Shown here in pieces: positions 1,255-22,699 of a stretch of 64,000 nucleotides of DNA. Within the stretch, counting starts at the first letter, position 1; each line of letters opens with the position of its first letter. The position numbers were made by a program, and so were the translations under genes. The notes under the pieces were generated by a model. It saw only the letters and a program-made list of their open reading frames with translations. It ran no database searches and had not been told where the DNA came from. Origin of the DNA: Blastocladiella emersonii ATCC 22665 (lineage: Eukaryota; Fungi; Blastocladiomycota); contig JANHCV010000004.1 of the NCBI GenBank assembly GCA_025594325.1, positions 992,001 to 1,056,000 on the forward strand, in the 5' to 3' direction.

Positions 1255-3010
1255 ATGTCGCGCCCGAACCCGTCCAAGCGCAAGAACCGCCAATACAACC
1301 GCCTGCCCAACGAGGACACGGCGTTACTGCCTGGTCCGCAGGGCGGGCCCATGCCCGGCGCCGGCGCCAGCAGCACGGGCTACGCGGCGCACCCGGGCGC
1401 GGCGGCCGCGGGCGCCAAGCTCAAGCCCAAGCAGCCCAACCGCACGACCAAGACGGCGCAGAAGCTGACGCTGTTCCCCGAGGACGGGCCGACGATGCAG
1501 CCGCTGTTGTCCGAGGACATGCTGCTGCCCGAGGCCGAGGACCTGTTCGACCAGCTCACCCACATCCCGCCCGAGCGCATCGGCAAGCTCGACCGCACCA
1601 AGCTGCCGCGCGTCACCTCCTACTGCGTCGCCAACGCGTACCAGTTCGACGAGCTCATCGAGTTCCTCAAGTCGCGCCCACACGTCACCGCGCCCCGCAA
1701 GTTCGACGAGTGCGTCTACGTCGCCCTCAACTCGTCCGTCGGCCAGGTCGTCCCGCAGCCCGCCAACACCTCGGCCGCCGCGCTCGACGCCATGACCCAC
1801 CACCACCACCCGAACATGCACCTCGGCGCGGGCATGCCCGGCATGAACCCCGGCCTCCCGCCCACGGGCCCGTCGCTCGACCTCATGGAGGCGTACCGCG
1901 CCCACTCCGAGGCCATGGCCATGGGCGCCGGCGTCGGCGCCGCCCAGGAGAAAAAGGGCGAGCTGTTCCTGTTCGAGTACGGCGTCGTGGTGTTCTGGGG
2001 CTTCTCGGCCACCGAGGAGCGCACGCTGCTGCGCCAGTTTGCGCCGTTCGAGTCGGAACCGCTCGACGCGGCCGACGTGGAGGGCACCCGCGAGGAGTTC
2101 AGCTTCCACTACAACAGCAGCTACCAGCCCCGCATCTACAACGATATCATCTCGCTCAAGTCCGACAACTATATGGCCAAGCTCACCATCTCGCACGCCA
2201 TTGCGCAGTCCACCAAGCTCACCCTCTTTGAGGGCCTCATGGACGAGACCATCTCCGCTACGAAACACATCCCGCAGACCATGGCCGAGACGGGCAAGGT
2301 GCCCATGTCGCGCACCGCTATCACCAAAAAGATCGGCCAGCTGTTCGTTACTCGCGCTCGCTCGCGGGACTGGGGCTCGCCGATCTGACTCTGACTCGCC
2401 TCGCCGTGTCGCGTTTAGGTTCATCATGCGCATCAACGTGAATCTCGTGAGTAACGTCCTGTACGTCCCGCTCTCTGCATCGCCCGACATACCGGCGATC
2501 GGCGATCGACTGACCTGAAAATCCCACCATGTAGCGATGTCCCCGAGGTCTTCTGGGGCGAGCCTGCGCTCGAGCCCTTGTACCAGGCCATCCGCGGCTA
2601 CCTCGAGATCAATCAACGCGTCGAGCTCCTCAATCAACGACTCGCCGTCATTTCCGACCTCCTCGACATGTACGCTTCGCTCCCCTCGCCCACTATCGGA
2701 CAGCTCGCTCACACGCGGTCATTGTTAGGCTCAAGGAACATCTGACGAGCACGCACGGCGAGGTACGTGAAACCTTCCGCTGGCACTCGTCCGCGTCTGA
2801 CGGACTATCTGCCTCCTCAACCGCTTCCCACCAACCCCATGCGTAGGCCCTCGAGTGGATAGTCATCATCCTAATCGGTGCGCTTTCTCTCTCACTGGGA
2901 GCTCGCAGAGCTGCTCACTGACGCTCCAAACTCTAGGGTTCGAGATCGTCATTGGTATCGTGACGATTCTCTTCGACTACTTCTCGTACATCAAGGGCAA
3001 CCACGAGTAG
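1255..3010 (+). CDS. RMD1: RMD1/DUF155 family protein (sporulation protein RMD1-like)
   Basis: ORF 1255-2342 has RVTSYCVANAY, FLFEYGVVVFWG, YQPRIYNDII, KLTISHAIAQSTKL. Spliced small exons give LFIMRINVNL..LDVPEVFW..LYQAIRGYLEINQRVELLNQRL..LEWIVIILIGFEI. TAG at 3008-3010. Confidence 0.9.
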
Positions 3011-3526
3011 GATGCTATTGCGAAACGGACATTATATAGTACCCATTTGACCAACTCATTGATGCGTGTCACCACCGGGGCACTTGCTGACTGGGAGGAA
3101 TACCCCCGTCGTCCAACTTGGCGAGCGCGAATCGACCCCCCCCGTGTGGTTTCCCGCACCTCCCGCACTTCTGTCCACGGTGACCGTTTGCTGCGTGCGA
3201 AGCTGCGTACCGTAGATTTACTTGTTCTGCTGGCAGCGAACGTATGACTAGCGTGCGAGGCGGCTCTGCCGCTTGCGTCCTCTCGCACCTGCTTTGCACA
3301 CAATCAATGTTCAGCGAGGACACATCAACCGCGGCCGGACAGAACAATGTGATCTGGTGATGCGCGACATGAGAAACGCTTAGCGACATGCGGCCTATGA
3401 AGCTGTGATGAGGTATTGATTGGGACGCGTTGCGCCACTCACATGATCGCGACTTGAGTCGAGCCAGGGGATCTGGTCGAGTACAAGAGCATTGCGAGCG
3501 AGTGCGGGACCAAGGGTTCTGAAGAA

Positions 3527-3949
3527 GTGCATATCGAGGCCAAGCCGAGCGCTGGGGGTGCCGGAGCGGCGGCGGCTCCGCCGAAGCGCGAGATCCGGTC
3601 GCGCGACCTGGCCAAGGAGCCGTTCCTGGACGACACCGAGTACTACCAGGACCGCAAGGAGGAGTTCGATCTGCTCGTGCAGCTGATGCAGGAGAACCCG
3701 AAGCCGCCAAAGGCGCAGCACCAGCAGATCGACCTGTTCAAGCGGTTCCGCACGTACTGGCTGCTCGCGTGGATCATCATCAACGGCGGCCTGCTGTTCA
3801 TCCTGCTGTCGCCCGCGTCGGTCGGCATCAAGAACCCGGACTTTGCCGCGGGGTACCTCAACCTGCTGTTCAACGTCGTGCTCGGGTTCTCGGCGTTCCG
3901 GTTCGTCTTCTCGACGCTGTACCGCATCCAGAACGTGTGGTTCTCGTAG
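3527..3949 (+). pseudogene. Duplicated last exon of the chitin synthase (orphan 3' fragment)
   Basis: Same protein as CHS terminal exon 19731-19309 (VHIEAKPS...RIQNVWFS*). No upstream CHS exons on this side; in-frame TGA at 3455. Confidence 0.85.
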
Positions 3950-4110
3950 GTGCGACGCGACGACCGCCCGTCGTGCCCGTTTGTGATGTTATCCCTCCCC
4001 TACCCTTTGTGAATTTGCGTTTTTGCTCTCATACACCTCCGGTCCTTGTCTCTCGTATCCCTCGCGTCCAAACTCGCAGCCATGAGCCAAGACTTGAACG
4101 AGCTGCTGCA

Positions 4111-4419
4111 TCCACACCACGACAGCGCCCGACTCGCGGGCCCACTGCAGGTTGGTGAACGAGAACTTGGCGATCTGCAGCTGCGCGGCCGTCGACAGCA
4201 CGATGATGGCGAGCAGGATGACGGCGATCAGGGCAAACGACGCGATGATGCCGTGGAACACGCCGCGCGCCGATTTCGGGTTGTTGCCGAGCGACGCGAT
4301 GAAGGTCATGAGCAGCAGCAGCAGCGCGTAGAAGGGCCGCGACACGAGCAGCACCGCGCGCAGCACCTGGAACCCGGCCGAGTTCTCGTTGCTCGGGATG
4401 AACTTGACGTTGTCGGCCG
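4111..4419 (-). pseudogene. Copy of internal CHS exon segment (mirror of 18839-19147)
   Basis: Direct-orientation copy of 20245-20547 ([29 protein letters not shown]...RESGAVV). Confidence 0.9.
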
Positions 4420-4987
4420 GGTCTGCGACTGGGACAGCTGCTGGGCGCAGTTGCAGCCGAGCTGTATCTGCGACTGCGACTCGGGAACAAGCGAAAGTGG
4501 AGAAGCGTGGCCAAGGACTGTTGCCGCAGCCGTCGCGGTTCAGCAGCAGCAGCGGCGCCCCGCATACCTCGACCTCTCACTGCAAGGCGCGCAGCGGCTC
4601 ACGGGGCCTGCAGCTTCACCTGACCCGTGCGGACCCGCGGCGGATGCGCAGTGACTTATTGCTCTCTCAAGCCCCCGCAGTCTCTACCCGCCTCGACCAA
4701 CCGAGCCGAGAGAGCAGGTCGATGCCGCTTCAACTCAACTCAGCGGACGTTGCCCCCGAGACGGCGGCGCAATCCACGACCACGATCCATCCGATTATAT
4801 TGCAGGGAGTGCAGTGCTTCATGGTAGTGGGCGAGTGAGGGCGCAAGGGAGGGGCCGCGGCGGCGCTCGTCCGTGGCATGGGACACGGAGCGATCAGCGC
4901 GCTGTCTCGCCCCGCTCACGTGTTTGTTCGACGCGTCTCCACTTTCTCGTGTTCTCGCACGGTCGAGGGGCGAGACAAATAGGCGCA

Positions 4988-5047
4988 ATAGAGATAGACA
5001 TAGAGATAGACATAGACATAGACATAGACATAGACATAGACATAGAG
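4988..5047. repeat. (GACATA/GAGATA)n hexanucleotide microsatellite, mirrored at 18211-18270
   Basis: About 10 tandem hexamers read directly. Confidence 0.95.
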
Positions 5048-5982
5048 GTAAAGAACGGGATGTAGTTTGTTCAAACAGAGAGAGACCACGGCCAACCGAC
5101 GCCGCGGTTCGGTCCCACGCGCCGTCGCGCTCGCTTGAGCCCGCCCCAGCCTCGTCTGGTCGGGCCGGTCGAGAACCGGCTCGCCGACTGACGCGCGTGT
5201 CACATGCTGCAGTACGAGAGGGTCAAGTGGAGGAGAAGGGGTCAGAACGAGGAACGGGTCCCGATTAATGGGAACTGCGACACCGCCGCCACGACGCACG
5301 ACTTGGGATGCACCAAAGGTCGCTACCCCACTCACCGCTGGCGCGTCGAAACCACCCACAACCCAGCTCCATCCAGCCTGCCCTCGAGGTTGACAACGAC
5401 CCCAGCCGACCAGCAGAGAGAGTCCCATACTCGCAGAGGTGCCGCACCATCGGTCCCGCTACTCGCTTGGCGAGGTCACCGCGCGGGACGGGTGATGCGG
5501 CACGTGCGTCGAGGACCCTTCGCGGCGCGATCCAGGAGACGATGACGAGTTGGAGAGACAGCGGACGAGGGAGCGATTGGTGGGTATGCGACAAGAGTCT
5601 GGACGATGGGTGCGCGCAAGGGGTGAAGAGGCAGCAGCCGACTGCGGGAGCGGCACACCTTGGATGCACCCGTTTTGCACGCCGCAGGTAGGCTGATACA
5701 ATGGGTTGGCTTCCCAGACGGGATGCGAGGGAAACATCAAGGGGAGGTGAGGTGGTGGAGGGGAGAGGAGGTGCGTCGCGATACAGGAGCCGTGCGGGGC
5801 GGTGATGGGGACGCGCGAGTGAAGTGCGCGCGAGCGGGTCGACGTGTACCAGTCCAGCAATGTTGGGCGAGACGAGACGAGACGAGCAGCGTGTCGAGGT
5901 CGTAGATGGCCATGGTCGGGACGCAAAGCGTACGCGGGGTGAATGTTCTTGGGCGCGGTAGCAGTGGGATGGTGTCGAGAGT

Positions 5983-8900
5983 CTGTTCGGGAGATGAGCA
6001 AGCAAAGAGTCAGCGAGTAGCACTCGGGATGCGAGTTGGAGATGAGCCGTACCGAGTCCCAAAGTGGTCGACGAGTTGAGGTACCCGACGGCCCGCCTCG
6101 AGCGCGAGTACTTGAGCCGCGCAAGCAAACGTGACACTGTTGAGGGCCTGGTCCGCCGCGGTGCTGGTGGTGGTGGTTGGTCTCTCGAGTCGGCGACGTG
6201 TACCAGAGTCCGACGAGATGTTGAGGCTGTCGTAGCTACACGAAGCGGCGGTGTGAGCACGCGATCGGTCAACCGCGGCGGCAGCAGAATGTACGAGTGC
6301 CGTAAAACCCCTCGATGATCACCGTGGACCGCCGAGAGCGTCGAGCTGCGACACGACCTCCTTGAGCAGCGTGTACGAGCGCTTGTTGAGAACTCGGTCG
6401 GCCGTCGTGACTGACGTCGCACGGCAACATGCCCGTGTTAGAGCCTGACGAAATGTCGAAGCCGAGTGGGCCACGGAATCGACGTGGACAAGAACAGCTT
6501 GCGCGCACGCGTGGTGGCCAAGTCGTGGCCCTGGTCGTGTGGCACCTACGCGAAACGGCAGTGTGAACACGCGATCGGTCGACCGCAGCGACAGCAGAAC
6601 GTACGAGTGCGGAGAAACATATCGATCACCACCATGGACCGCCGGTAGAACTCGAGTCGCGAGAGCCGCGACTGCTGCAGCCGATCAGGCGCGTGAGAGC
6701 GTGAAGACGACCCCAGCCGCTGTGGTGATGGTGCAGCCCCACGCCGTGTTGATGGCCTGGCGACGCCAGGCTCCGCCGGACTTGGGGTTGATGCGCCACG
6801 ACCACTACACGATGCACGAGTCAGCTACGAGGTTTCGTTTGCAGGAGCACACGTTGCAAAGTACCGAGAATGTACGCCCAGCTGGCGCCAGAATGGTCGG
6901 CGACCAGGCGCGTCGCGTCGGCGATGTGCGCCAGAGCCCGACGAGGTGTTGAAGCTGCCGAACCGCCGCTGGATCAATCTGGACGCCGACGAGATCATGT
7001 CGCGCGCGCGAGGCGACGATCGTGATGTGGTTCCACCCGTTCTGTGATGGCTACACGAGGCAAACGGGTGAACACGCGATCGGCAACCGCGCTCGGATCA
7101 GGACATACGAACGCTGGGGCGTTACTGTACCCCCCTTGGTTACCATGAACCGCGCGAGTCTCGAGCTGCGGCTGCCGTCGATCAGGTGCGCGGGAGCGCG
7201 ACGTCGAGCTGGTTCTCGATCCCGACGCGATGCTGAGGAGGAACCGCCGCCACTTGATCAGTGCGGGCGCGGGCGAGTAGAAGTTGCGCGCGCGCACACG
7301 AGGCCTGGATGATGGTGTTGTGGTGGCGCGACGACTACACGAGGGCAGCGATGTGAGCATGCGATCAGCTGACCGCGGCGACGGCGGAACGTACAAATGC
7401 CGTGAAAGTCCTTGACAATCACCGCCGAGCGCCGAGCGCCGAAAGCGTTGAGCCGCGTCTGCCGCCGATGAGGTTCAAGAGTGTGGTGGCGACCCAGCTG
7501 CTGCGTCGACGGCACGGCGATGTCGCGCAGTGCATGGTCGCGCGAGTAGATCGACCCGCAACGGTGGTCACGGGCAAGTGGATGGGGAGGAGCTTGTCGA
7601 GCGCGAGTAGGTGAGACGCGATGGCGCGCGTGGCGGTCGACGACTCGGTCGGCATTGGCGATGGCGGTCGTGGCAGGCGCCGCGCGGTGAGAGGCACGTA
7701 CTGGAAGCCGACCCGACGAGATGGTGAGGCTGAGCCGGCGACTGCATCGACGCGGAACGAGAACGTCGCGCTCGCGCGCGTCATACTGGCACGTCATACC
7801 GATCGTGCGCAGGCCACACAAAGCAAAGGGGTGAGTGAACACGCGATTTGCCAGCTGCGCCAAGATGAGAACGTACGGTTGCTGAAATAGAGCTCCTTGA
7901 CCACCAAAAACCACACGATTGTCGAGCCCTGGACGCCGTGGATCAGGTACGAACGAGAAGACGTGATGGCGAGCGAACTTGACGATGCGTCGACGGCAGG
8001 GCAGGGCGCCGCAGAGCTTGGCCAGGATCGCGCGCCGACCTGTCACGGCGGCCGCGAGAGCATGGAGATGACGAGGAGCGCCTAGATCGCGCACGTACTT
8101 ACGCAGCGAGTGCACGCGTTGTTGATGATGAACTGGTCGACCTGGGTGACGGCGGTGGTTGGCGCCGCGCATGTCGCCGCGCGTATTTACTTGAATCCGA
8201 CGAGATGGTGAGGCCGAGCCGCCACTGGATCGACGCGGGAGCAGAAGTGAACCAGTCGCGCGCGCGCGAGGCCATGATGGTGTCGCGGTAGTGCTGCGGC
8301 TACACGAGCTCGAGGTCGAGTAGTGAGTACGCGACTGGCCAACTGCCCAAAAATCGGGTCGTACAAACGCTGAAGCCGAACCCTTTGGTCGCCGTAAACT
8401 GTGCAGATGTCGAGTCATGGCCGCCGTCGATCAGGTGCGCGAGAGCGCGACGTCGAGCCGGTCCTCGAGCCCGACGAGATGTTGAAGAGGAACCGCCACC
8501 ACTTGATCGATGCGGACGCGGGCAAGAAGCAGGTTGTGCGCGCGCGAGCCCTTAATGATGGCGTCGTGGTGGCGCTAGGACTACGCGAAACAGCGGTGTG
8601 AACATGCAATCGGTCGACCGCACAGAGGTTACGACAGGGCGTACGAATGCCGAGGAGCCCTCGACGATCATGGTGGAGCGCCGAGAGCGTTGCGTCGCGA
8701 CTGCCGCCGATCAGATGCGCGCGAGAGCGTGAAGACGACCCGACCCGACCCGGCTGCCGCGCCGACAGCACGGCGCGGTGCTGCCGAGCATGGCCGAGCG
8801 AGTGGATCGGTCCACAACGGCGGCCACGAGCACGAAGATGATGATGAGCTCGTCGAGCGCGAGTAGGTGGGTTGAAGACTCGGTCGGCCTTGACAATGGC

Positions 8901-9943
8901 GGCCGTGGCAGGCGCCGCGAGGCGGGAAGCACGTACTGGAATCCGACGCGACCCGACGAGATGATGGTGAAGCTGAGCCGGCGACTGGATCGACGCGGGC
9001 GCGAACTTCGCGCGCGTCGCGTCATACTGGCGCGTCATACCGATCGTGGGCCGGCTACACAAAGCAAAGGGGTGAGTGAACACGCGATTGGCCAACTGCG
9101 CCAAGATGAGAACGTACGATGGCTGAAGTCGACCTCCCGGGTCACCGTGAGCTGCGCGAGCGCCGTGCCCTGGACGCCGTGGATCAGGTACGAGAAGACG
9201 CGATGGTGAACTTGACGACGCGTCGACGGCACAACAGGGCGTTGTTGGGCTTGGCCAGGCTCGCACGTCGACCCGTCACGGCGGCCACGGGCATGGAGAT
9301 GACGAGGAGCTCCTTGCGCACGAGTGCTAGAGCTGCGAGTGCGCGGCCATGACCATGAGGATGGCGAGGAGCGCCTCAATCGCGCGCGTACTTGAGCAGC
9401 GGGTGCACATGTCGTTGGCGAACTTGGTCGGCCTTGGTGATGGTGGTAGTGGTTGGCGCCGCGCGTGTCGCCGCGCGTACTTGAACCCGACGAGATGGCG
9501 AGGCCGAGCCGCCACTGGATCGACGACGCGGTAGCGTACGAGAACAGGTTACGCGCACACACGAGGCCGCGATGGCGCCGTGGTAGTGCTGTGACTACAC
9601 AAGGAAGAAGTGTGAGTACGCGACCGGCCAGCTGCCCAGAGATCAGGCCGTACGAAGGCCGAACCCGAACTACTTGGTCGCCGTGAACTGCACGAGCGTT
9701 GAGCCGTGGACGCCGTCGATCAGGCGCGCGAGAGCGTGATGCCGCGCCGCGCTTGTCGCCGAGCATGGCCGGGCGAGTAGGTCGATCCGTCACGGCGGCA
9801 ACGAGCATGACGCGGGCGGGAGGAGAGCGAGAAGGAGAGGAGCGAGACGAGGAAAATCGAGCTCTACACAAGAGTTACGGGCGGGATGGCACGAGGATAA
9901 CAAACGGGAGTCAGCAACACGATCATATTGTTGTTGCTGGTAC
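5983..9943 (-). repeat. Degenerate tandem exon+intron cassette array (left-arm copy)
   Basis: Mirror of 13315-17275. Confidence 0.85.
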
Positions 9944-10081
9944 GGGGAGGCGTTGCGACCGGGCCGTTCGAGGAAGGAAGGGCATGATGAGGATGAGGCA
10001 AGTCGTGGTCGCGGCCACCGACACTAATGACGGCCGAGGGAAAGGAATGAGAGAGATGAGCGCGAGCCTCCTCAACCAATG

Positions 10082-10220
10082 CGTCTCGCCGCCGCCGACG
10101 CTCAGGATGAGAGAGGGAAGGAGATGAGAGCCCGCCGCCGACGCTCAGGATGAGAGGAGGTGATGGTGAAGGGATGGGAGCGTCGGCCACCGACTCGTCT
10201 CGCCGCCGCTGACGCTCAGG
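10082..10220. repeat. Three-copy ~24-bp mini repeat CGCCGCCGACGCTCAGG(ATGAGAG), mirrored at 13038-13176
   Basis: Copies near 10090, 10133 and 10201 (variant) separated by purine-rich linkers. Confidence 0.85.
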
Positions 10221-10835
10221 GTCGGGAAAGCGAGGAAGGAGGAGATTCGTCGTCGAGATAAGCTTGAAAGTCCCCCGTACCATTCATGTTCATGCGCGCG
10301 CACACACACACGGGCAGCGAGCGAGGCGAGGTGATGGTTGATACATGGTGTTGTGCGGGAGGATGCTCGACCCGGATCGGATCGCGGGGGCTGATCATGG
10401 TCGATGCGTGCGCGCCGTCGAGTACTGGCGGTTGCAGGGAGTATGGAGGGCGCGAGCGCGAACGTTGGAGGGAGAGGGTAGGCCGCGGGAGCGCGAGCGT
10501 GCGGCGGTAGCGATGGTGCCCGGGCGGGCAGCAAGGCGCGCATCGCGACGCGCCTGGATCAGTGCGTGAAACTACATTTTCGAGCGGATCATAACATAGC
10601 AACGCCGGGAATGAGTCGCGGCGCGAGACACGGCGGGTGCGGCGTGCGCAAGTGTCTCGCGCGGTGTCTCGCGGCTCTCATCAAGAGTGGCGAAAACGTT
10701 CACGTGCGCCCGCTGGCGGGGACCATCGTCGATTGCCGCGGTAAGAGGAGCGCGGCGGCGGGGGACGCGTCTCGAAAATGGAGACACCCGGGACGCGTCG
10801 CGCCCGATGCGAGACGTCACGCGAGCGGCGCGTGC

Positions 10836-12422
10836 GTGCGAGATCTTGAGACAACTCGTGATAGGCAGCGCGCCGCCCGGAGCCTCCACGCGTTACGCAA
10901 CATTCGCGAGAAGTCACACGAGCGATAACATGACGCGGGAGCGTGAACGCCTCACCAATGTGTTTGCCGCGGCCTGCTGTTTGGCTCTCCTTCGTGGCTC
11001 ACGATCGATTGGAGCGGTCAACAAGCCTGCGAGTCCGTCGGCGCGCCCTGAGCGCCTTGAAGCCGCTGAAGATGGCCACGACGCAGCGAGTTCAACCACA
11101 GCGGATCCTTCTCATGCTACTCCCTTCCTGGCTCATATCAGCGTCACCGATGCACTGGGCCCGTGCTTGCGTCGAGGGCACGGACTCGCGGAAGATTGCG
11201 GGCTTCTGACGCGGTACAAAAAGGTGTACTTGTCGTGGTTGAGCACACGACCAGTGCGAGCCCTGCCAAGGAGGCGGCTGCCGCCGAACGCTGGTGTGGA
11301 CAGCTGCATGGCGTGGAAGACGATCGAGCGGGCTCGGCAAACCTCCACGAAAACGAGACTCAGAGCGGATCCGGGCGACATGGACGAGAATCGGCGAGAT
11401 TGGGGAGAAGCCGAGGGGGTTGCCCCATGTATTGCTTTCGAGTTCCATGAGCCGTCACGGCGCGAGTTCTGCTGCATGAAGTCAAGTGCGAGGAGTGCGG
11501 GTCGGGCGTCGAGAATGGCGAGGAAGATGGCGTACCAGCGGGGATAGTCGGGCGGAGCGCAAGCCAGAGCGCGAGCCACCTCGAGCAGGCGTGGGCGTCG
11601 ATCACGTTGCTCCTGCAGGGGGCGCAACGCGACGTGTTTGACTGCGCACGCTCTCGCGCTCTACACAAGATCACCGGTATCAGACAGCGGGAGTGTTGAG
11701 TCCGGAGGCACATGAAGCAAAATGCTGACCGGACCTTCAGCGGTCCCGTGGCCGAAGGGGTAGTACGGGCCGTTGCACGCGCGACTTGGCCTCGAGCCGC
11801 AAGAGCCCGATCGCGAAGCAGGACTCGTTGAGGTGGTGTCTCGCCCCACTCCCGTTCAGCTCCAGGAACGATCTAAGCAACGCTAAGGTCACGCATGGCG
11901 AAGTCGATGCGGGTGGGACGCGCGAGGCTCGCGGATGGGTCGGCGATGGTTACGATGTTCGCAAAGCGACGGCCCGTCTGGATGTGGCCAACTGAAGCCG
12001 AGTGGCGCATCTCGAGCAGTGCGATTCTCATACACATGATATGAGTTGGTCCGTCGTATCGCTGTACATGGGCGAGATCATGGCGGCTGCCGCAGGAACA
12101 GACCGATACTGGAGTAGGAGCAGGGATATCGTTGCAGCTAGTTCCCGGGGCTTCTGTGCATAGGATTCATGGTCTCGACAATTGTCGATTTTGACATGAG
12201 TGCGAGGGAGAGCAGCGATCGACGAGGCGATCACGCAGGCGATCACGAAGGCGAAAGCACTCAGCAACGGGTCACGTGGTGTGAGCGACACGTTCGCTCT
12301 GTGAGCCGGCTTCAGGATGTTTTTTGACACCGGGCAGACACCCGTCATGATTCTCATCATGATTCTCGATTTTTCCTATAAGCTTGCTCACATTGATCCC
12401 GGACGAACCCCCGCGCCGCGCG
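10836..12422. other. Unique 1,587-bp palindrome spacer (loop)
   Basis: Symmetry breaks exactly after 10835 and before 12423. Visibly less GC-rich than the genes. No recognisable family. Confidence 0.9.
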
Positions 12423-13314
12423 GCACGCGCCGCTCGCGTGACGTCTCGCATCGGGCGCGACGCGTCCCGGGTGTCTCCATTTTCGAGACGCGTCCCCCGC
12501 CGCCGCGCTCCTCTTACCGCGGCAATCGACGATGGTCCCCGCCAGCGGGCGCACGTGAACGTTTTCGCCACTCTTGATGAGAGCCGCGAGACACCGCGCG
12601 AGACACTTGCGCACGCCGCACCCGCCGTGTCTCGCGCCGCGACTCATTCCCGGCGTTGCTATGTTATGATCCGCTCGAAAATGTAGTTTCACGCACTGAT
12701 CCAGGCGCGTCGCGATGCGCGCCTTGCTGCCCGCCCGGGCACCATCGCTACCGCCGCACGCTCGCGCTCCCGCGGCCTACCCTCTCCCTCCAACGTTCGC
12801 GCTCGCGCCCTCCATACTCCCTGCAACCGCCAGTACTCGACGGCGCGCACGCATCGACCATGATCAGCCCCCGCGATCCGATCCGGGTCGAGCATCCTCC
12901 CGCACAACACCATGTATCAACCATCACCTCGCCTCGCTCGCTGCCCGTGTGTGTGTGCGCGCGCATGAACATGAATGGTACGGGGGACTTTCAAGCTTAT
13001 CTCGACGACGAATCTCCTCCTTCCTCGCTTTCCCGACCCTGAGCGTCAGCGGCGGCGAGACGAGTCGGTGGCCGACGCTCCCATCCCTTCACCATCACCT
13101 CCTCTCATCCTGAGCGTCGGCGGCGGGCTCTCATCTCCTTCCCTCTCTCATCCTGAGCGTCGGCGGCGGCGAGACGCATTGGTTGAGGAGGCTCGCGCTC
13201 ATCTCTCTCATTCCTTTCCCTCGGCCGTCATTAGTGTCGGTGGCCGCGACCACGACTTGCCTCATCCTCATCATGCCCTTCCTTCCTCGAACGGCCCGGT
13301 CGCAACGCCTCCCC

Positions 13315-16300
13315 GTACCAGCAACAACAATATGATCGTGTTGCTGACTCCCGTTTGTTATCCTCGTGCCATCCCGCCCGTAACTCTTGTGTAGAGCTCG
13401 ATTTTCCTCGTCTCGCTCCTCTCCTTCTCGCTCTCCTCCCGCCCGCGTCATGCTCGTTGCCGCCGTGACGGATCGACCTACTCGCCCGGCCATGCTCGGC
13501 GACAAGCGCGGCGCGGCATCACGCTCTCGCGCGCCTGATCGACGGCGTCCACGGCTCAACGCTCGTGCAGTTCACGGCGACCAAGTAGTTCGGGTTCGGC
13601 CTTCGTACGGCCTGATCTCTGGGCAGCTGGCCGGTCGCGTACTCACACTTCTTCCTTGTGTAGTCACAGCACTACCACGGCGCCATCGCGGCCTCGTGTG
13701 TGCGCGTAACCTGTTCTCGTACGCTACCGCGTCGTCGATCCAGTGGCGGCTCGGCCTCGCCATCTCGTCGGGTTCAAGTACGCGCGGCGACACGCGCGGC
13801 GCCAACCACTACCACCATCACCAAGGCCGACCAAGTTCGCCAACGACATGTGCACCCGCTGCTCAAGTACGCGCGCGATTGAGGCGCTCCTCGCCATCCT
13901 CATGGTCATGGCCGCGCACTCGCAGCTCTAGCACTCGTGCGCAAGGAGCTCCTCGTCATCTCCATGCCCGTGGCCGCCGTGACGGGTCGACGTGCGAGCC
14001 TGGCCAAGCCCAACAACGCCCTGTTGTGCCGTCGACGCGTCGTCAAGTTCACCATCGCGTCTTCTCGTACCTGATCCACGGCGTCCAGGGCACGGCGCTC
14101 GCGCAGCTCACGGTGACCCGGGAGGTCGACTTCAGCCATCGTACGTTCTCATCTTGGCGCAGTTGGCCAATCGCGTGTTCACTCACCCCTTTGCTTTGTG
14201 TAGCCGGCCCACGATCGGTATGACGCGCCAGTATGACGCGACGCGCGCGAAGTTCGCGCCCGCGTCGATCCAGTCGCCGGCTCAGCTTCACCATCATCTC
14301 GTCGGGTCGCGTCGGATTCCAGTACGTGCTTCCCGCCTCGCGGCGCCTGCCACGGCCGCCATTGTCAAGGCCGACCGAGTCTTCAACCCACCTACTCGCG
14401 CTCGACGAGCTCATCATCATCTTCGTGCTCGTGGCCGCCGTTGTGGACCGATCCACTCGCTCGGCCATGCTCGGCAGCACCGCGCCGTGCTGTCGGCGCG
14501 GCAGCCGGGTCGGGTCGGGTCGTCTTCACGCTCTCGCGCGCATCTGATCGGCGGCAGTCGCGACGCAACGCTCTCGGCGCTCCACCATGATCGTCGAGGG
14601 CTCCTCGGCATTCGTACGCCCTGTCGTAACCTCTGTGCGGTCGACCGATTGCATGTTCACACCGCTGTTTCGCGTAGTCCTAGCGCCACCACGACGCCAT
14701 CATTAAGGGCTCGCGCGCGCACAACCTGCTTCTTGCCCGCGTCCGCATCGATCAAGTGGTGGCGGTTCCTCTTCAACATCTCGTCGGGCTCGAGGACCGG
14801 CTCGACGTCGCGCTCTCGCGCACCTGATCGACGGCGGCCATGACTCGACATCTGCACAGTTTACGGCGACCAAAGGGTTCGGCTTCAGCGTTTGTACGAC
14901 CCGATTTTTGGGCAGTTGGCCAGTCGCGTACTCACTACTCGACCTCGAGCTCGTGTAGCCGCAGCACTACCGCGACACCATCATGGCCTCGCGCGCGCGC
15001 GACTGGTTCACTTCTGCTCCCGCGTCGATCCAGTGGCGGCTCGGCCTCACCATCTCGTCGGATTCAAGTAAATACGCGCGGCGACATGCGCGGCGCCAAC
15101 CACCGCCGTCACCCAGGTCGACCAGTTCATCATCAACAACGCGTGCACTCGCTGCGTAAGTACGTGCGCGATCTAGGCGCTCCTCGTCATCTCCATGCTC
15201 TCGCGGCCGCCGTGACAGGTCGGCGCGCGATCCTGGCCAAGCTCTGCGGCGCCCTGCCCTGCCGTCGACGCATCGTCAAGTTCGCTCGCCATCACGTCTT
15301 CTCGTTCGTACCTGATCCACGGCGTCCAGGGCTCGACAATCGTGTGGTTTTTGGTGGTCAAGGAGCTCTATTTCAGCAACCGTACGTTCTCATCTTGGCG
15401 CAGCTGGCAAATCGCGTGTTCACTCACCCCTTTGCTTTGTGTGGCCTGCGCACGATCGGTATGACGTGCCAGTATGACGCGCGCGAGCGCGACGTTCTCG
15501 TTCCGCGTCGATGCAGTCGCCGGCTCAGCCTCACCATCTCGTCGGGTCGGCTTCCAGTACGTGCCTCTCACCGCGCGGCGCCTGCCACGACCGCCATCGC
15601 CAATGCCGACCGAGTCGTCGACCGCCACGCGCGCCATCGCGTCTCACCTACTCGCGCTCGACAAGCTCCTCCCCATCCACTTGCCCGTGACCACCGTTGC
15701 GGGTCGATCTACTCGCGCGACCATGCACTGCGCGACATCGCCGTGCCGTCGACGCAGCAGCTGGGTCGCCACCACACTCTTGAACCTCATCGGCGGCAGA
15801 CGCGGCTCAACGCTTTCGGCGCTCGGCGCTCGGCGGTGATTGTCAAGGACTTTCACGGCATTTGTACGTTCCGCCGTCGCCGCGGTCAGCTGATCGCATG
15901 CTCACATCGCTGCCCTCGTGTAGTCGTCGCGCCACCACAACACCATCATCCAGGCCTCGTGTGCGCGCGCGCAACTTCTACTCGCCCGCGCCCGCACTGA
16001 TCAAGTGGCGGCGGTTCCTCCTCAGCATCGCGTCGGGATCGAGAACCAGCTCGACGTCGCGCTCCCGCGCACCTGATCGACGGCAGCCGCAGCTCGAGAC
16101 TCGCGCGGTTCATGGTAACCAAGGGGGGTACAGTAACGCCCCAGCGTTCGTATGTCCTGATCCGAGCGCGGTTGCCGATCGCGTGTTCACCCGTTTGCCT
16201 CGTGTAGCCATCACAGAACGGGTGGAACCACATCACGATCGTCGCCTCGCGCGCGCGACATGATCTCGTCGGCGTCCAGATTGATCCAGCGGCGGTTCGG

Positions 16301-17275
16301 CAGCTTCAACACCTCGTCGGGCTCTGGCGCACATCGCCGACGCGACGCGCCTGGTCGCCGACCATTCTGGCGCCAGCTGGGCGTACATTCTCGGTACTTT
16401 GCAACGTGTGCTCCTGCAAACGAAACCTCGTAGCTGACTCGTGCATCGTGTAGTGGTCGTGGCGCATCAACCCCAAGTCCGGCGGAGCCTGGCGTCGCCA
16501 GGCCATCAACACGGCGTGGGGCTGCACCATCACCACAGCGGCTGGGGTCGTCTTCACGCTCTCACGCGCCTGATCGGCTGCAGCAGTCGCGGCTCTCGCG
16601 ACTCGAGTTCTACCGGCGGTCCATGGTGGTGATCGATATGTTTCTCCGCACTCGTACGTTCTGCTGTCGCTGCGGTCGACCGATCGCGTGTTCACACTGC
16701 CGTTTCGCGTAGGTGCCACACGACCAGGGCCACGACTTGGCCACCACGCGTGCGCGCAAGCTGTTCTTGTCCACGTCGATTCCGTGGCCCACTCGGCTTC
16801 GACATTTCGTCAGGCTCTAACACGGGCATGTTGCCGTGCGACGTCAGTCACGACGGCCGACCGAGTTCTCAACAAGCGCTCGTACACGCTGCTCAAGGAG
16901 GTCGTGTCGCAGCTCGACGCTCTCGGCGGTCCACGGTGATCATCGAGGGGTTTTACGGCACTCGTACATTCTGCTGCCGCCGCGGTTGACCGATCGCGTG
17001 CTCACACCGCCGCTTCGTGTAGCTACGACAGCCTCAACATCTCGTCGGACTCTGGTACACGTCGCCGACTCGAGAGACCAACCACCACCACCAGCACCGC
17101 GGCGGACCAGGCCCTCAACAGTGTCACGTTTGCTTGCGCGGCTCAAGTACTCGCGCTCGAGGCGGGCCGTCGGGTACCTCAACTCGTCGACCACTTTGGG
17201 ACTCGGTACGGCTCATCTCCAACTCGCATCCCGAGTGCTACTCGCTGACTCTTTGCTTGCTCATCTCCCGAACAG
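13315..17275 (+). pseudogene. Decayed multi-intron repeat gene / exon+intron cassette array
   Basis: Twelve intron-like segments, mostly GTA[CT]...[CG]TGTAG, 58-80 nt. They are separated by homologous exon-like units (consensus-like HxxxIIxASRARNxFSxAPASIxWRxxLxISSGS and AHLIDGxxxSTLAQFTxTK). Motifs fall in shifting frames with stops. Confidence 0.7.
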
Positions 17276-18838
17276 ACTCTCGACACCATCCCACTGCTAC
17301 CGCGCCCAAGAACATTCACCCCGCGTACGCTTTGCGTCCCGACCATGGCCATCTACGACCTCGACACGCTGCTCGTCTCGTCTCGTCTCGCCCAACATTG
17401 CTGGACTGGTACACGTCGACCCGCTCGCGCGCACTTCACTCGCGCGTCCCCATCACCGCCCCGCACGGCTCCTGTATCGCGACGCACCTCCTCTCCCCTC
17501 CACCACCTCACCTCCCCTTGATGTTTCCCTCGCATCCCGTCTGGGAAGCCAACCCATTGTATCAGCCTACCTGCGGCGTGCAAAACGGGTGCATCCAAGG
17601 TGTGCCGCTCCCGCAGTCGGCTGCTGCCTCTTCACCCCTTGCGCGCACCCATCGTCCAGACTCTTGTCGCATACCCACCAATCGCTCCCTCGTCCGCTGT
17701 CTCTCCAACTCGTCATCGTCTCCTGGATCGCGCCGCGAAGGGTCCTCGACGCACGTGCCGCATCACCCGTCCCGCGCGGTGACCTCGCCAAGCGAGTAGC
17801 GGGACCGATGGTGCGGCACCTCTGCGAGTATGGGACTCTCTCTGCTGGTCGGCTGGGGTCGTTGTCAACCTCGAGGGCAGGCTGGATGGAGCTGGGTTGT
17901 GGGTGGTTTCGACGCGCCAGCGGTGAGTGGGGTAGCGACCTTTGGTGCATCCCAAGTCGTGCGTCGTGGCGGCGGTGTCGCAGTTCCCATTAATCGGGAC
18001 CCGTTCCTCGTTCTGACCCCTTCTCCTCCACTTGACCCTCTCGTACTGCAGCATGTGACACGCGCGTCAGTCGGCGAGCCGGTTCTCGACCGGCCCGACC
18101 AGACGAGGCTGGGGCGGGCTCAAGCGAGCGCGACGGCGCGTGGGACCGAACCGCGGCGTCGGTTGGCCGTGGTCTCTCTCTGTTTGAACAAACTACATCC
18201 CGTTCTTTACCTCTATGTCTATGTCTATGTCTATGTCTATGTCTATGTCTATCTCTATGTCTATCTCTATTGCGCCTATTTGTCTCGCCCCTCGACCGTG
18301 CGAGAACACGAGAAAGTGGAGACGCGTCGAACAAACACGTGAGCGGGGCGAGACAGCGCGCTGATCGCTCCGTGTCCCATGCCACGGACGAGCGCCGCCG
18401 CGGCCCCTCCCTTGCGCCCTCACTCGCCCACTACCATGAAGCACTGCACTCCCTGCAATATAATCGGATGGATCGTGGTCGTGGATTGCGCCGCCGTCTC
18501 GGGGGCAACGTCCGCTGAGTTGAGTTGAAGCGGCATCGACCTGCTCTCTCGGCTCGGTTGGTCGAGGCGGGTAGAGACTGCGGGGGCTTGAGAGAGCAAT
18601 AAGTCACTGCGCATCCGCCGCGGGTCCGCACGGGTCAGGTGAAGCTGCAGGCCCCGTGAGCCGCTGCGCGCCTTGCAGTGAGAGGTCGAGGTATGCGGGG
18701 CGCCGCTGCTGCTGCTGAACCGCGACGGCTGCGGCAACAGTCCTTGGCCACGCTTCTCCACTTTCGCTTGTTCCCGAGTCGCAGTCGCAGATACAGCTCG
18801 GCTGCAACTGCGCCCAGCAGCTGTCCCAGTCGCAGACC

Positions 18839-19147
18839 CGGCCGACAACGTCAAGTTCATCCCGAGCAACGAGAACTCGGCCGGGTTCCAGGTGCTGCGC
18901 GCGGTGCTGCTCGTGTCGCGGCCCTTCTACGCGCTGCTGCTGCTGCTCATGACCTTCATCGCGTCGCTCGGCAACAACCCGAAATCGGCGCGCGGCGTGT
19001 TCCACGGCATCATCGCGTCGTTTGCCCTGATCGCCGTCATCCTGCTCGCCATCATCGTGCTGTCGACGGCCGCGCAGCTGCAGATCGCCAAGTTCTCGTT
19101 CACCAACCTGCAGTGGGCCCGCGAGTCGGGCGCTGTCGTGGTGTGGA
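18839..19147 (+). pseudogene. Inverted 309-bp copy of an internal CHS exon segment, 162 bp past the CHS stop
   Basis: Versus source 20547-20245: 5 substitutions and two 3-nt insertions by my manual alignment. Confidence 0.92.
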
Positions 19148-19308
19148 TGCAGCAGCTCGTTCAAGTCTTGGCTCATGGCTGCGAGTTTGGACGCGAGGGA
19201 TACGAGAGACAAGGACCGGAGGTGTATGAGAGCAAAAACGCAAATTCACAAAGGGTAGGGGAGGGATAACATCACAAACGGGCACGACGGGCGGTCGTCG
19301 CGTCGCAC

Positions 19309-22300
19309 CTACGAGAACCACACGTTCTGGATGCGGTACAGCGTCGAGAAGACGAACCGGAACGCCGAGAACCCGAGCACGACGTTGAACAGCAGGTTGA
19401 GGTACCCCGCGGCAAAGTCCGGGTTCTTGATGCCGACCGACGCGGGCGACAGCAGGATGAACAGCAGGCCGCCGTTGATGATGATCCACGCGAGCAGCCA
19501 GTACGTGCGGAACCGCTTGAACAGGTCGATCTGCTGGTGCTGCGCCTTTGGCGGCTTCGGGTTCTCCTGCATCAGCTGCACGAGCAGATCGAACTCCTCC
19601 TTGCGGTCCTGGTAGTACTCGGTGTCGTCCAGGAACGGCTCCTTGGCCAGGTCGCGCGACCGGATCTCGCGCTTCGGCGGAGCCGCCGCCGCCCCGGCAC
19701 CCCCAGCGCTCGGCTTGGCCTCGATATGCACGTCCTCAGACCCTTTCGTCCCCCAGCTCGTCTCTGCGGGCGGGCAAATTTGAGTGTTGGTAAGTGTCGG
19801 TGAGTGGGGTGAGTGGTGGTGGATGCGGAGAGGTAGAGGTCGAGTGGTGGCGGTGATCGCGAGTCGGCCGGGGTGGATCGGAGGTCAAAGGAAGCGAGTG
19901 AGTCACGCAAGGAAACGTACCCGAGATGTTGCTGAACGCGAAGATCTAGACAAATGTTCCGATGGATGATAGTTGTGGGCGGTGGGCGGTGGGCGGTGGG
20001 TGGTGGTGGGTGGTGGTGGGTGGAGTTGGACGGTGGTGGCGAAGATCAAGCGAGGGCAGTGAGTTGGACACATTTGAGCGACGCTTCGTGAGACAGGAAC
20101 GGACGAAACGTACCTGCAGGACGTTGATGTAGAACGGGCTGAGCAGCGTGTACTGGATGATGTTGAAGATCGGGTGGTACCAGTCGCCGTAGATGAGCGA
20201 CGACACGATGTAGAGGCCCCACGTCGCGAGCAGCGCGAGCAGCGTCCACACGACGGCACCCGACTCGCGGGCCCACTGCAGGTTGGTGAACGAGAACTTG
20301 GCGATCTGCAGCTGCGCGGCCGTCGACAGCACGATGATGGCGAGCATGATGACGGCGATCAGGGCAAACGACGCGATGATGCCGTGGAACACGCCGCGCG
20401 CCGATTTCGGGCTGTTGCCGAGCGACGCGATGAAGGTCATGAGCAGCAGCAGCGCGTAGAAGGGCCGCGACACGAGCAGCACCGCGCGCAGCACCTGGAA
20501 CCCGGCCGAGTTCTCGTTGCTCGGGATGAACTTGATGTTGTCGGCCGCGGGCTGCTCCATGAACTTGACGAACCCGGCGACGAGGTAGTGGTACGAAAAG
20601 TAGAAGTTGCAGAGCGAGATGTAGCTGAAGATGAAGTTGAGGATGAGGTACGCGAACTCGAACGACAGGACGAGCTTGCGGACGAACGTGTGGCCCGACG
20701 TCCAGATGCGGTTGGCGTGCATGAGGGCGTACAGCAGCGCGAACGTGGACCCGTTGAGCCAGCGGCGACGCTGCGGGATGAGCTCGGTGAACTCGTCGGG
20801 CGCGTCCGTCACGGCCACCGACGACTTGTCGTACCGCAGCACCCAGCCGGCGTCCTTGCGGGTCGTGATTTCGAAGCACAGGATGCTAAGGAAAGGCGAG
20901 ACGTGAGTGGACAGGGGCGGCGAGGGCAGAAAGCGAGGAGGGGCGAAGGACAAGGGACGCGTACCGATCTTCCGCGAGGTACATGTTCCGCTGGAAGATA
21001 CCGCCAGATACCTCGACTTTTTCGCCGTAGAAGTACTCCTGGAGCGGGCGGCCCTCGAGAGCGGCGTAGCGATACGCGGAGAAGGCTCCGGGAAGTACCG
21101 TGATGTACCCCATCATACTTTCGATCGGCTTGTCCAAAATGTTGCTCATTTTGTACTCGAAATTCTGCGCAGCGACGATCGGGTTGAGCAGCGACTTGAA
21201 ATCGCCCTCGACGGCGATCTCGCCGCAGGCGCCGCCGACCTGGGGGTCGAGGAACATCTTCCAGAGGCGGTAGATGGACAGCGGCTGCGGCTGGGTGCCG
21301 GCGTCGATGAGCACGACCACGTTGGGCTTGAGGACCGGGCAGAAGGCCGTGAGGGCCCAGCGGTGCGAGTTGATCTTTTTGGCGTTCTTCTCCTTGAGGC
21401 AGAAGATGGTCTGCATCGGCACGATCTTGCGCTTGGTCGACGTGAGGTTGTTGACGAGCGTCGTGCCCTTCTCGGGCGCCGAGTCGAAGTTGTTGGTGAT
21501 GGTGGACTCGAACAGGTGCGCCGAAACGTCCTCGCCGTTGAAGGTGGCCCGGATCAGGCCGTCGCGGTAGCCGCCCATCATGGACAGGATCGTGATCACG
21601 GCCGGGTCGATCTTAGCCCTACCATCTGAGACGATGGCGACAACGACCTTGCGCCAGGCGTCCTCCTGGCCCCAGTGGGCCGAATCGGCGTCCAGCATCT
21701 GCCGAATGTTGTCGTGCACCGCCTGCATCGTTTTTACAAAAAGTTGGCCTGGTTCCTGCACAAACGGGCGAGAAACAGTCAAAACAAGCGATTCCCAGCG
21801 ATTCCCATCGATACCCGTCGATTCCCGTCGAGTTAGAAGAAAGGGGAGCGCGTACGTTGTACATGGTGACGACGATCATGAGCTCGATGTCGTTCTTCGA
21901 GTGGATCAGGTTGTACTTGCCGGGGAACTCGGCGGGCGTGCCCGTGACGGCCGTGTAGCGAAGCCTAAACGTTGGGATCAAAAGGAAGCGAAGGGATGAG
22001 TGAGAAAGTGAGTGGGGAGCGGGCGAGGCGCGAGGCGCGAGGAGGCGGCCGCGGCCACGCGACGCGTTCGGCAGCCACGTACGTCGTGAACTCACTGTCC
22101 TGGCCGGGCTGTAGCAGCTGCGGCGGGATCTTGACCGTGACGGGGTTCGGCTGGCCGACCTGAGCGCGGATCGTGAGGGCCTTGGCCGGGTCGAAGGCCT
22201 CGCCGTTGGCCGCGGCCGCGACGGTCGGCGACACCGTGGCCGCAGCAGCACCGGCACCGAGGGACGTGGTGGCGGCGTAGGTCGTCGTCGTCGTGGCCGT

Positions 22301-22699
22301 GGTGATGACCGAGGGCGCGCCAGTCGCAATCTGGACGCGGTGGTCGGCCGACGAGGCGGCCGTGGGCGGCGGGTAGGCGCCGGTGGCCTGCGGCATGAGG
22401 CCGGCGGGCGGGGCGCCCGAGAGGTCGACCATGGCGTAGCCCTGCTGCTGCTGGACCTGCGTCTGCTGCTGGTGGTGGTACACGGTGTGCTGCTGCTGCT
22501 GCTGGCCGGGCATCGGGGCCTGGGCGTAGACGGGCGACGGCGGCGAGTAGGCGCCGTTCCCGGTCGGCATGGGCATCATGGGCGCGGCGTTGACGACGTT
22601 GCCGGGCGGGTACGGCAGGGCGCCGGTCGAGTCGCCGCCAGCGCCGCCGAGCGGCAGGTAGCCGTTGGCCCGGTTGGGCGAGACGGGGATGCGATCCAT
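19309..22699 (-). CDS. CHS: Chitin synthase, division 1 (class I-III type)
   Basis: Motifs [80 protein letters not shown]. Multi-exon; start taken at ATG 22699; TAG at 19309-19311. Confidence 0.96.

Follow-up and report, generated by a model that had tools for sequence, protein, structure and literature searches.

The region between RMD1 and a chitin synthase gene (CHS) of the zoosporic fungus Blastocladiella emersonii ATCC 22665 carries a near-perfect 16-kb palindrome with 7.3-kb arms. It is best explained as a genuine chromosomal structure, namely an inverted segmental duplication that was built in at least two steps, and we assign a probability of roughly 0.65 to this reading. In the first step an older inverted copy of the CHS 3' end, together with downstream DNA, would have been placed beside RMD1. 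Much later one arm would have been overwritten by the other via intrachromosomal homologous recombination, either by gene conversion or by break-induced or synthesis-dependent copying, making 7.3 kb identical. The copying may have halted a few tens of bases before the end of the homology, leaving the outermost 31 nt with their old divergence.

The analyzed window comprises 64,000 nt and corresponds to positions 992,001-1,056,000 of contig JANHCV010000004.1 (forward strand). The palindrome is thereby located at approximately 1.0 Mb, near the middle of the 2.5-Mb contig. It consists of the following parts:

3527-10835, left arm identity core, 7,309 nt, with one difference from the right arm, at 3565
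10836-12422, unique spacer, 1,587 nt, GC content 55-66%
12423-19731, right arm identity core, 7,309 nt, continuing into the remainder of the CHS gene
3565 (A) and 19693 (G), sole mismatch within the arms, synonymous (GGA/GGG), at a third codon position

A base-by-base comparison confirmed the original prediction of a near-perfect palindrome with a single mismatch at 3565/19693. The sequence 3527-10835 was the reverse complement of 12423-19731 with a coordinate sum of 23258 and no indel, and the arms were identical at 7,308 of 7,309 positions, i.e. at least 99.9% identity for kb-scale inverted arms. Slightly wider limits were returned by a repeat search (3503-10835 and 12423-19755) and by gapped blastn (3496-10835 and 12423-19764, containing 7 mismatches and two gaps of one base each). 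The outer flanks were unique as predicted, except for a diverged edge of 31 nt and a 307-nt piece of a CHS exon (20249-20555) which is also found inside each arm. For the spacer neither a second copy within the 64-kb window nor inverted self-similarity was found; a codon-position GC signal was absent and the Pfam search gave no match. The inner arm boundaries were abrupt, and no decayed inverted homology was detected at the spacer ends. In total, the locus represents a gene-poor stretch of about 14 kb within a compact genome, composed of a unique core and arms containing a tandem array, with a GC content equal to the genome background.

The genes and gene pieces at the outer ends of the palindrome were:

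1255-3010, plus strand, RMD1 (DUF155; Pfam 8e-40), in the unique left flank
3307-3949, plus strand, gene model annotated in GCA_025594325.1 (175 aa), based on the left copy of the last CHS exon
19309-19763, minus strand, working last exon of CHS, a division 1 chitin synthase (annotated gene 19309-22699, product of 911 aa)
4118-4426, minus strand, P' of the left arm, mirror of the right-arm P'
18832-19140, plus strand, P' of the right arm, antisense copy of the CHS exon piece 20249-20555, located beyond the CHS stop codon

The RMD1 product matched 'sporulation protein rmd1 [Blastocladiella emersonii ATCC 22665]' at 99% identity. It had been assumed that RMD1 is transcribed into the arm, but the annotated gene ends at 3010, about 500 nt short of the left arm. 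The functional last CHS exon was indeed located within the right arm (19763-19309, minus strand). An upstream CHS exon matched Chitin_synth_1 (Pfam, 1e-56), and the C-terminus encoded by the working last exon shared 50-54% identity with the C-termini of the orthologues in B. britannica, Catenaria and Allomyces. An open frame (3458-3946) contains the left exon copy, and the 175-aa model had no match in the Pfam search; it represents a truncated pseudo-copy or else a small orphan gene. P' shared 96.8% identity over 310 columns with the 307 nt of CHS 20249-20555, and its 5 substitutions and two 3-nt slips were common to both arm copies. Sequence of CHS exons is therefore present in both orientations at this locus, as the last exon in each arm and as the antisense P'.

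The evidence for an older duplicate is located directly outside the identity cores:

3496-3526, plus strand, diverged outer edge of the left copy, corresponding to the initial 31 nt of the last CHS exon, from which it differs by 6 third-position changes and a 1-nt gap
19732-19764, minus strand, diverged outer edge on the right, where the last exon of the working CHS gene begins directly after the acceptor cag (19766-19764)

The gapped homology with its 7 mismatches extended to 3496/19764, which is the splice acceptor of the CHS last exon. All 7 mismatches (6 in the edge and the one at 3565) affected the third base of a codon, an outcome whose chance probability is about 0.0005 when this phase is specified and 0.0014 when any one phase is allowed. 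Beyond 3496 no further CHS homology was present in the left flank at the DNA or protein level. The edge encodes GWGTKGSDEVH in the orthologues and CGTKGSEEVH in the left copy. Since the left copy retained the E of the orthologues where the working CHS has D, and in turn lost the invariant W, both copies must have changed after they separated. The codon-phased differences and the orthologue-like residue in the left copy thus point to an older duplicate which was later overwritten. Arm identity appears to be younger than the duplication, as judged from a small sample (the 31-nt edge and position 3565). Arm-to-arm homogenisation, as originally predicted, is in agreement with this signature of an older paralogous copy. 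The old divergence is still readable only because the edge lies in coding sequence. We infer that the homogenising event was gene conversion, and a recurring one in the sense of maintenance, and that decay has made the old duplicate unrecognisable at its inner, non-coding end.

Alternatively, the palindrome could stem from just one inverted duplication of very recent date, produced through fold-back priming or by template switching during replication. Here the arms would be alike because they are young, and no later copy-correction would be needed. One difference in 7,309 nt, the abrupt inner boundaries without decayed homology and the missing structure in all related genomes examined fit this explanation, and the second small inverted copy of a CHS exon nearby indicates that such events do occur at the locus. 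It expects, however, a sharp junction with a microhomology of a few bases at most, whereas we found 31 nt that were codon-phased, approximately 25% diverged and ended at an exon boundary. Furthermore, the left copy keeps an orthologue-like residue which its presumed template has lost, and an older CHS-like piece would still be required beside RMD1. We regard a single recent event as unlikely.

On the other hand, there are points against the two-step duplication. Firstly, the evidence for the older duplicate consists of one 31-nt edge and one mismatch, and residual homology was missing at the inner boundaries. Secondly, the structure was absent from the related genomes examined, and conservation over time is the classical proof of maintenance. 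A comparison with related species had been proposed along with the palindrome, and it did not recover the structure there. No inverted repeat of at least 50-60 nt was found at the CHS orthologue loci of B. britannica, Catenaria anguillulae and Allomyces javanicus, nor downstream of RMD1 in B. britannica. In the latter species the order PRP28-RMD1 is kept and followed by a BAR/PH gene, and its CHS orthologue has other neighbours. Conservation of the structure with diverging sequence was consequently not seen among the three relatives. These are very distant (RMD1 60% identical), and the absence of a palindrome there is not decisive. Of the proposed maintained locus, the part concerning copy-correction is in agreement with the edge divergence; long-term maintenance would draw on one 31-nt edge, and the structure was absent from the related species.

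Support for the copy ratio and the junctions was obtained at k-mer and contig level from unitigs of three or four independent sequencing libraries of the strain, here named X1 to X4. Arm unitigs had about twice the depth of the spacer in three libraries (209-218 compared to 100-107 in X1, 52-71 compared to 33 in X2 and 8-13.5 compared to 4-6 in X3). The depth of the arms, for which a check against half the single-copy level had been suggested, was thus about double that of the spacer. Almost all arm unitigs were at about two copies, so that the arm is not a high-copy dispersed repeat. Unitigs across the inner junctions started exactly 30 nt inside the arm (10806-11165 in X1, X2 and X3; 12267-12452 in X3), as expected from a k=31 graph at a true repeat boundary. 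At the junction of RMD1 and the left arm 99% (X1) and 98% (X2) of the sampled words were present, and for a 71-nt probe placed on it both sampled words were found in X1 and X2. Libraries X3 and X4 bear tails of 454 adaptor and loxP linker, hence more than one sequencing technology is represented. According to the genome paper of the strain the assembly was made from HiFi reads of 10.5 kb, which are long enough for spanning one arm. Together, the 2:1 ratio of arm to spacer, the inner junction words in several libraries and the words of the RMD1-side junction substantiate the original prediction of a physically real structure.

It is nevertheless conceivable that one locus or two alleles were wrongly laid out as a palindrome during assembly. 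A de Bruijn long-read assembler, haplotig purging and short-read polishing were used, and the 7.3-kb arms exceed many reads. From the genome paper a mean HiFi coverage of approximately 191x can be calculated, and its authors report the removal of haplotigs with purge_dups. If X1 is that HiFi run, the spacer is at about half and the arms are at about the mean coverage, and the palindrome would then be present on one of two haplotypes. The estimate from the Illumina run (X2) places the spacer near single copy; calibrations of the copy number from the paper's read totals thus disagree between the two libraries. Against a misassembly, contigs of three libraries connect the single-copy spacer on either side to the same end of the arm, which means that any molecule bearing the spacer has inverted arms on both sides. 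In addition, the arm-to-spacer ratio was about 2:1 in X1, X2 and X3, words specific for the left outer junction were present and the left edge has a diverged sequence of its own, unexpected of an artefactual copy. A fold-back read would carry no unique spacer of 1.6 kb. A fold-back artefact is unlikely because the arms have about twice the spacer depth and both spacer/arm junction words occur in independent libraries; neither missing junction support nor a missing spacer was observed, and relative to the spacer the arms were at neither single nor half depth. An artefact of assembly or haplotype in general we consider quite improbable.

The interior of the arms was dominated by non-coding sequence:

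13450-17164, plus strand, degenerate tandem array of about 10 units of approximately 457 nt, 64-78% alike, with a higher-order period of about 1.24 kb
6094-9808, minus strand, mirror array of the left arm, a copy of the right-arm array

The units were found by nhmmer iteration and unit alignment. The array had neither a codon-position GC signal nor a Pfam match, and its best conserved blocks were intron-like (GTACG...CTCAC...pyrimidines...TAG). Units of spliced coding sequence were considered and rejected, as removal of the conserved intron-like block left no frame open in all units. Coding paralogues were rejected as well: 3-periodicity was only faint and many indels were not multiples of three. 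In a scan of the arms for GC3 and codon phase the CHS pieces alone stood out, and the Pfam search of 20 ORFs matched nothing. The gene models annotated on the two identical arms encode different products of 300 and 362 aa and were for this reason not treated as real genes. No Rfam family and no tRNA was detected among RNA genes.

A gene-poor inverted repeat of about 14 kb with a unique core and array-bearing arms, located near the middle of a 2.5-Mb contig and containing CHS exon sequence in both orientations, could also have a function of its own. It might be a source of hairpin RNA or siRNA acting on chitin synthase, or a centromere of the inverted-repeat type. However, the intron-like signals in both arms point outward from the centre, so that the two arm transcripts would be identical and not complementary. 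For dsRNA to form, transcription would have to continue through the spacer or overlap the 3' end of CHS. A conserved gene has a coding exon within one arm, an unusual arrangement for a centromere; the GC content equals the genome background and the nearly uniform depth of two copies argues against a high-copy dispersed repeat. A function of either kind seems slightly less probable still than an artefact. 

Some composite transposons are likewise built of long inverted repeats around a unique middle, and two inverted copies of one element would look similar. Yet no transposase, recombinase, integrase or reverse-transcriptase domain was found in the ORFs of arms and spacer, the arm starts inside a host exon, the depth indicates two copies with no additional one in the 64-kb window and no convincing Helitron-like or TIR-like terminus was seen at the junctions. 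A transposon is hence very improbable, and in rejecting it we agree with the original prediction, on the grounds of the missing domains, the copy number of two and the end within a host exon. A site-specific invertible switch was rejected, as there is no recombinase domain in or near the element and the arms are 7.3 kb long instead of being short sites.

Returning to the inverted duplication with later copy-correction, a cellular function is not needed for explaining the structure. Most of each arm is non-coding (the decayed array and CHS fragments), therefore selection on duplicated genes is not required. A second, truncated copy of the C-terminal CHS exon is a likely side effect. As further likely side effects conversion could carry changes into the working CHS exon, and the spacer could become inverted when the arms recombine.

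The common view of large perfect palindromes is that they are unstable curiosities, restricted to sex chromosomes and asexual animals. They are not mentioned in the genome paper of the model fungus B. emersonii. Here, the homogenised DNA is mostly non-coding and can be explained without selection on duplicated genes. Identity ends within the last exon of a gene for a conserved cell-wall enzyme, which means that sequence can pass between a truncated pseudo-copy and the working gene. Owing to the coding context, the older duplicate has also left a trace that can still be read, and structures of this kind rarely offer such an internal clock. Taken alone this is a modest finding, and its value is that of one case within a genome-wide survey of Blastocladiella palindromes. 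More speculatively, and with rather low odds in our view, B. emersonii may keep dozens of large palindromes letter-identical by frequent intrachromosomal copy-correction, as a general property of recombination and not by gene-protecting selection; the locus might in addition be a source of CHS hairpin RNA if transcription crosses the spacer or enters the antisense fragment. If this were true, an almost gene-free palindrome would show that copy-correction is a general property of the recombination machinery.

Among known structures, regional centromeres of the S. pombe, Candida tropicalis and Komagataella type have a gene-free central core between inverted repeats. The unique core and the array-bearing arms of our locus, which lack a coding signal, would fit such a layout, but here an arm includes a working exon. 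The palindromes of human and ape Y and X chromosomes are reported to be homogenised by arm-to-arm gene conversion (Rozen et al. 2003, cited in PMC5490193; PMC11168930). They share with our locus kb-scale inverted arms of more than 99.9% identity, a unique spacer and a divergence at the boundary indicating that identity is younger than duplication (PMC5490193, PMC11168930). The Y palindromes carry multi-copy testis genes, in contrast to the short (7.3 kb) and almost entirely non-coding arms of B. emersonii. Moreover, our locus is situated on an ordinary fungal chromosome, and conversion is deduced from a single edge and not from a comparison of species.

No sexual cycle is known for B. emersonii. 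Palindromic collinear blocks were described in asexual animals, with 17 cases in Adineta vaga and 11 in Folsomia candida, and gene conversion was proposed as the homogeniser (PMC5490193). These are similar in that palindromes occur in an organism without a known sexual cycle, but they are palindromes of gene order with measurable divergence (Ks about 0.2 in Folsomia), whereas the one of B. emersonii is letter-identical and mostly non-genic (PMC5490193). The long, nearly perfect inverted repeats of C. elegans have a structure that outlasts their sequence and is conserved in C. briggsae and C. remanei (Zhao et al. 2007, PMC1803023). Although they are conserved among nematodes and the three distant relatives of B. 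emersonii were without an inverted repeat at CHS, both are autosomal and of kb scale, include gene ends together with intergenic DNA and can be read as being actively kept alike (PMC1803023).

Base-by-base comparison confirmed that positions 3527-10835 are the reverse complement of 12423-19731 over 7,309 nt, with no indels and a single mismatch within this core (3565 A vs 19693 G). The arm limits were 3503-10835 / 12423-19755 according to a repeat finder and 3496-10835 / 12423-19764 according to gapped blastn, the latter alignment including 7 mismatches and two one-base gaps. These analyses are in agreement with the original prediction regarding the arm coordinates, the absence of indels and the single mismatch. 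The inner arm boundaries were abrupt, and the spacer of 1,587 nt (10836-12422) showed neither inverted self-similarity nor a second copy within the 64-kb window. Both arms carried an identical (ATAGAC)n tract, a microsatellite with about 10 copies (4988-5046 and 18212-18270). Since this tract is prone to slippage, arms with any period of independent evolution behind them would be expected to differ here.

The features of the locus, with the chitin synthase gene named CHS, were as follows:
1255-3010, plus strand: RMD1 (public annotation; Pfam DUF155)
3307-3949, plus strand: 175-aa model (public annotation)
3527-3949, plus strand: left copy of the CHS last exon (GC3)
4029-8671, minus strand: 300-aa model (public annotation)
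13450-17164 (mirror 6094-9808), plus strand in the right arm: degenerate tandem array of ~10 units of ~457 nt
14587-19229, plus strand: 362-aa model, mirroring the 300-aa one (public annotation)
18832-19140 (mirror 4118-4426), antisense to CHS: P', 307 nt derived from an upstream CHS exon (GC3, blastn)
19731-19309, minus strand: working copy of the CHS last exon, part within the arm (GC3)
19309-22699, minus strand: CHS, 911 aa (public annotation; Pfam Chitin_synth_1, 1e-56)

The open frame of RMD1 (1255-2388) was 99% identical to the 'sporulation protein rmd1' of B. emersonii ATCC 22665. RMD1 had been thought to be transcribed into the left arm, but its annotated end lies about 500 nt short of it. 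The public models on the two identical arms differ in their product (300 aa vs 362 aa) and are unreliable, because the same DNA yields different proteins. The 362-aa model terminates within P', the antisense CHS fragment, where it is read in a non-CHS frame. An unusual CHS motif at 19913-19763 (microexon and start of the last exon) was common to the orthologues of B. britannica, Catenaria and Allomyces (NISETGWGTKG / NVSETWGTKG) and is thus typical of the CHS lineage, not peculiar to the B. emersonii gene. Additionally, a second, smaller inverted duplication was found at 23627-24423 / 27190-27986 (94.6% identical over 803 nt, 97% in the best 560 nt), where part of an F-box/RCC1-like gene is duplicated across PRP3. 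Inverted duplication has thus happened more than once in this neighbourhood, and homogenisation has not followed in every case.

The outer edge of the palindrome differed from its core. Beyond the identity core the left flank (3496-3526) matched the CHS last exon (19764-19732) for another 31 nt, and the match stopped exactly at the intron acceptor of the working gene. In the CHS frame, the six edge mismatches and the mismatch at 3565 were all third-position changes (chance ~0.0005 for that phase). The left copy encodes the edge peptide (S)ECGTKGSEEVHIE, where the orthologues (B. britannica, Catenaria, Allomyces) have GWGTKGS(D/N)EVH(I/F). It has lost the invariant tryptophan and kept the glutamate of the orthologues, which is aspartate in the working gene, so each copy has changed since the two separated, and most of this change was filtered by coding constraint. 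Past 3496 no further CHS similarity was found in the left flank at the DNA or protein level, as expected had all sequence beyond the exon been neutral and decayed. The edge does not resemble the junction of a one-step duplication; it is the kind of remnant left when an older duplicate is overwritten nearly to the end of homology. At the inner boundaries, an equally old remnant in non-coding DNA would be beyond recognition.

A two-tier pattern of identity core and diverged edge is confirmed at the CHS palindrome. We favor, with a probability of roughly 65%, a real palindrome with a history of two or more steps. First, long ago, the CHS 3' region would have been duplicated in inverted orientation, and recently 7.3 kb would have been homogenised via intrachromosomal gene conversion or break-induced copying. 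A single recent duplication by fold-back or template switch is rather unlikely, as it leaves the edge unexplained.

Whether the structure might stem from the assembly or from merged haplotypes was judged from depth and junctions. The published genome comprises 21 contigs (34.27 Mb in total) assembled with the La Jolla Assembler from PacBio HiFi reads of 10.5 kb mean length, then haplotig-purged and Illumina-polished; palindromes or inverted repeats are not mentioned there (PMC9730499). The locus was found in four DNA runs of the same sample (X1-X4). Unitigs, the assembled contigs of these runs, were placed over 7200-13100, and depths were taken from long, mismatch-free ones. Arm and spacer depths were 209-218 and 100-107 in X1, 52-71 and 33 in X2, and 8-13.5 and 4-6 in X3, a ratio of about 2:1 in all three runs, which contradicts the fold-back artefact considered initially. 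At either end of the spacer, its unitigs started exactly 30 nt into the arm (10806-11165 in X1, X2 and X3; 12267-12452 in X3). This is the k=31 graph pattern at a true repeat boundary, so that words joining spacer end and arm end exist in the reads. Both inner junctions are thereby supported at the contig/k-mer level (X1-X3), and as both spacer ends are joined to the arm end, every spacer-bearing molecule has inverted arm copies on either side of the spacer. At the RMD1-side junction, 99% (X1) and 98% (X2) of 140 words sampled over 2800-4200 were present, as were both sampled words of a 71-nt probe (3496-3566) in the two runs; this is weaker support in the same direction. The agreement extends over two or three library types at the least, as contigs of X3 and X4 had tails of 454 adaptor and of loxP linker from paired-end libraries. 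These tails account for the loose ends of X3 and X4 at 7228, 7548 and 10296, which are library artefacts and not biology. With junction words present, a 2:1 ratio and a left copy carrying its own diverged edge, an assembly or haplotype artefact is improbable.

The mean HiFi coverage implied by PMC9730499 is ~191x. If X1 were the HiFi run, its spacer depth would be about half of this mean and its arm depth about equal to it, as for a palindrome carried by only one of the two haplotypes. For the Illumina run, the spacer comes out near single copy on a rough estimate. That the palindrome exists is independent of this point. A join from 7775 to 9030 that omits one 1,254-nt higher-order repeat unit (flanks 7527-7775 and 9030-9511; mirror 13747-14228 and 15483-15731) also occurred among the contigs of X1, X2 and X3 (depths 150, 43.6 and 5). 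Unitigs of X1 just outside the skip had ~3x spacer depth (295-300) and those inside ~2x, which suggests a third partial array copy elsewhere or an array-length variant, for example on another haplotype. Furthermore, a short stretch of the 'unique' spacer has related sequences at other places in the genome, as contigs 95-99% similar to it at 11551-11791 and ~12109 had loose ends and ~2.5x single-copy depth.

Real exons of this genome have a GC3 of ~0.9 or higher, and by this yardstick the only coding-like pieces in the arms were the two CHS fragments. The remainder of each arm (~6.4 kb) and the spacer had no codon-phase signal; outside the CHS fragments no Pfam domain was found in 20 ORFs of arms and spacer, and no Rfam family or tRNA. 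P' shared 96.8% identity with 20249-20555; the five substitutions and the two trinucleotide slips between them are common to both arms. The symmetry centre of this inverted repeat (19694.5) lies at the arm mismatch 19693, 37 nt from the identity limit 19731; we cannot say whether this is coincidence. The array units were 64-78% alike with a higher-order period of ~1.24 kb, and the best conserved blocks (~62 nt) were intron-like (GTACG ... CTCAC ... pyrimidine tract ... TAG), orientated along the right-arm plus strand, i.e. outward from the centre. With this block removed no frame was open in all units, and indels between paralogous units were multiples of three in a minority. We take the array for a spliced repeat that is decayed or non-coding, rather than for an established gene.

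P' lies about 170 nt beyond the CHS stop codon, and a transcript extending through it could form a long hairpin whose loop would measure 1.1 kb. A hairpin-RNA locus with a function, or an inverted-repeat centromere, is very improbable, with several points against it; as a caveat to the dsRNA idea, the outward splice-like signals of both arms would make their transcripts identical, not complementary. A transposon pair, already disfavoured in the original prediction, is scarcely credible, for there is no mobility gene, only two copies exist and one end lies inside an exon.

No inverted repeat of at least 50-60 nt was found within 7-10 kb of the CHS orthologues of Catenaria anguillulae, Blastocladiella britannica and Allomyces javanicus. 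B. britannica has kept the PRP28-RMD1 pair, followed by a BAR/PH gene, and none of its CHS neighbours is present in the B. emersonii window. The palindrome is thus confined to the B. emersonii lineage, the three relatives being too distant (RMD1 60% identical) for dating or a test of structural conservation.

The nearest known parallels are sex-chromosome palindromes, where conversion between the arms homogenises them, the long C. elegans inverted repeats (PMC1803023) and the palindromic blocks of asexual animals, e.g. Adineta vaga and Folsomia candida (PMC5490193). The CHS palindrome stands out by its nearly gene-free arms, by a boundary that falls within a working exon and by the codon-phased relic at its edge.
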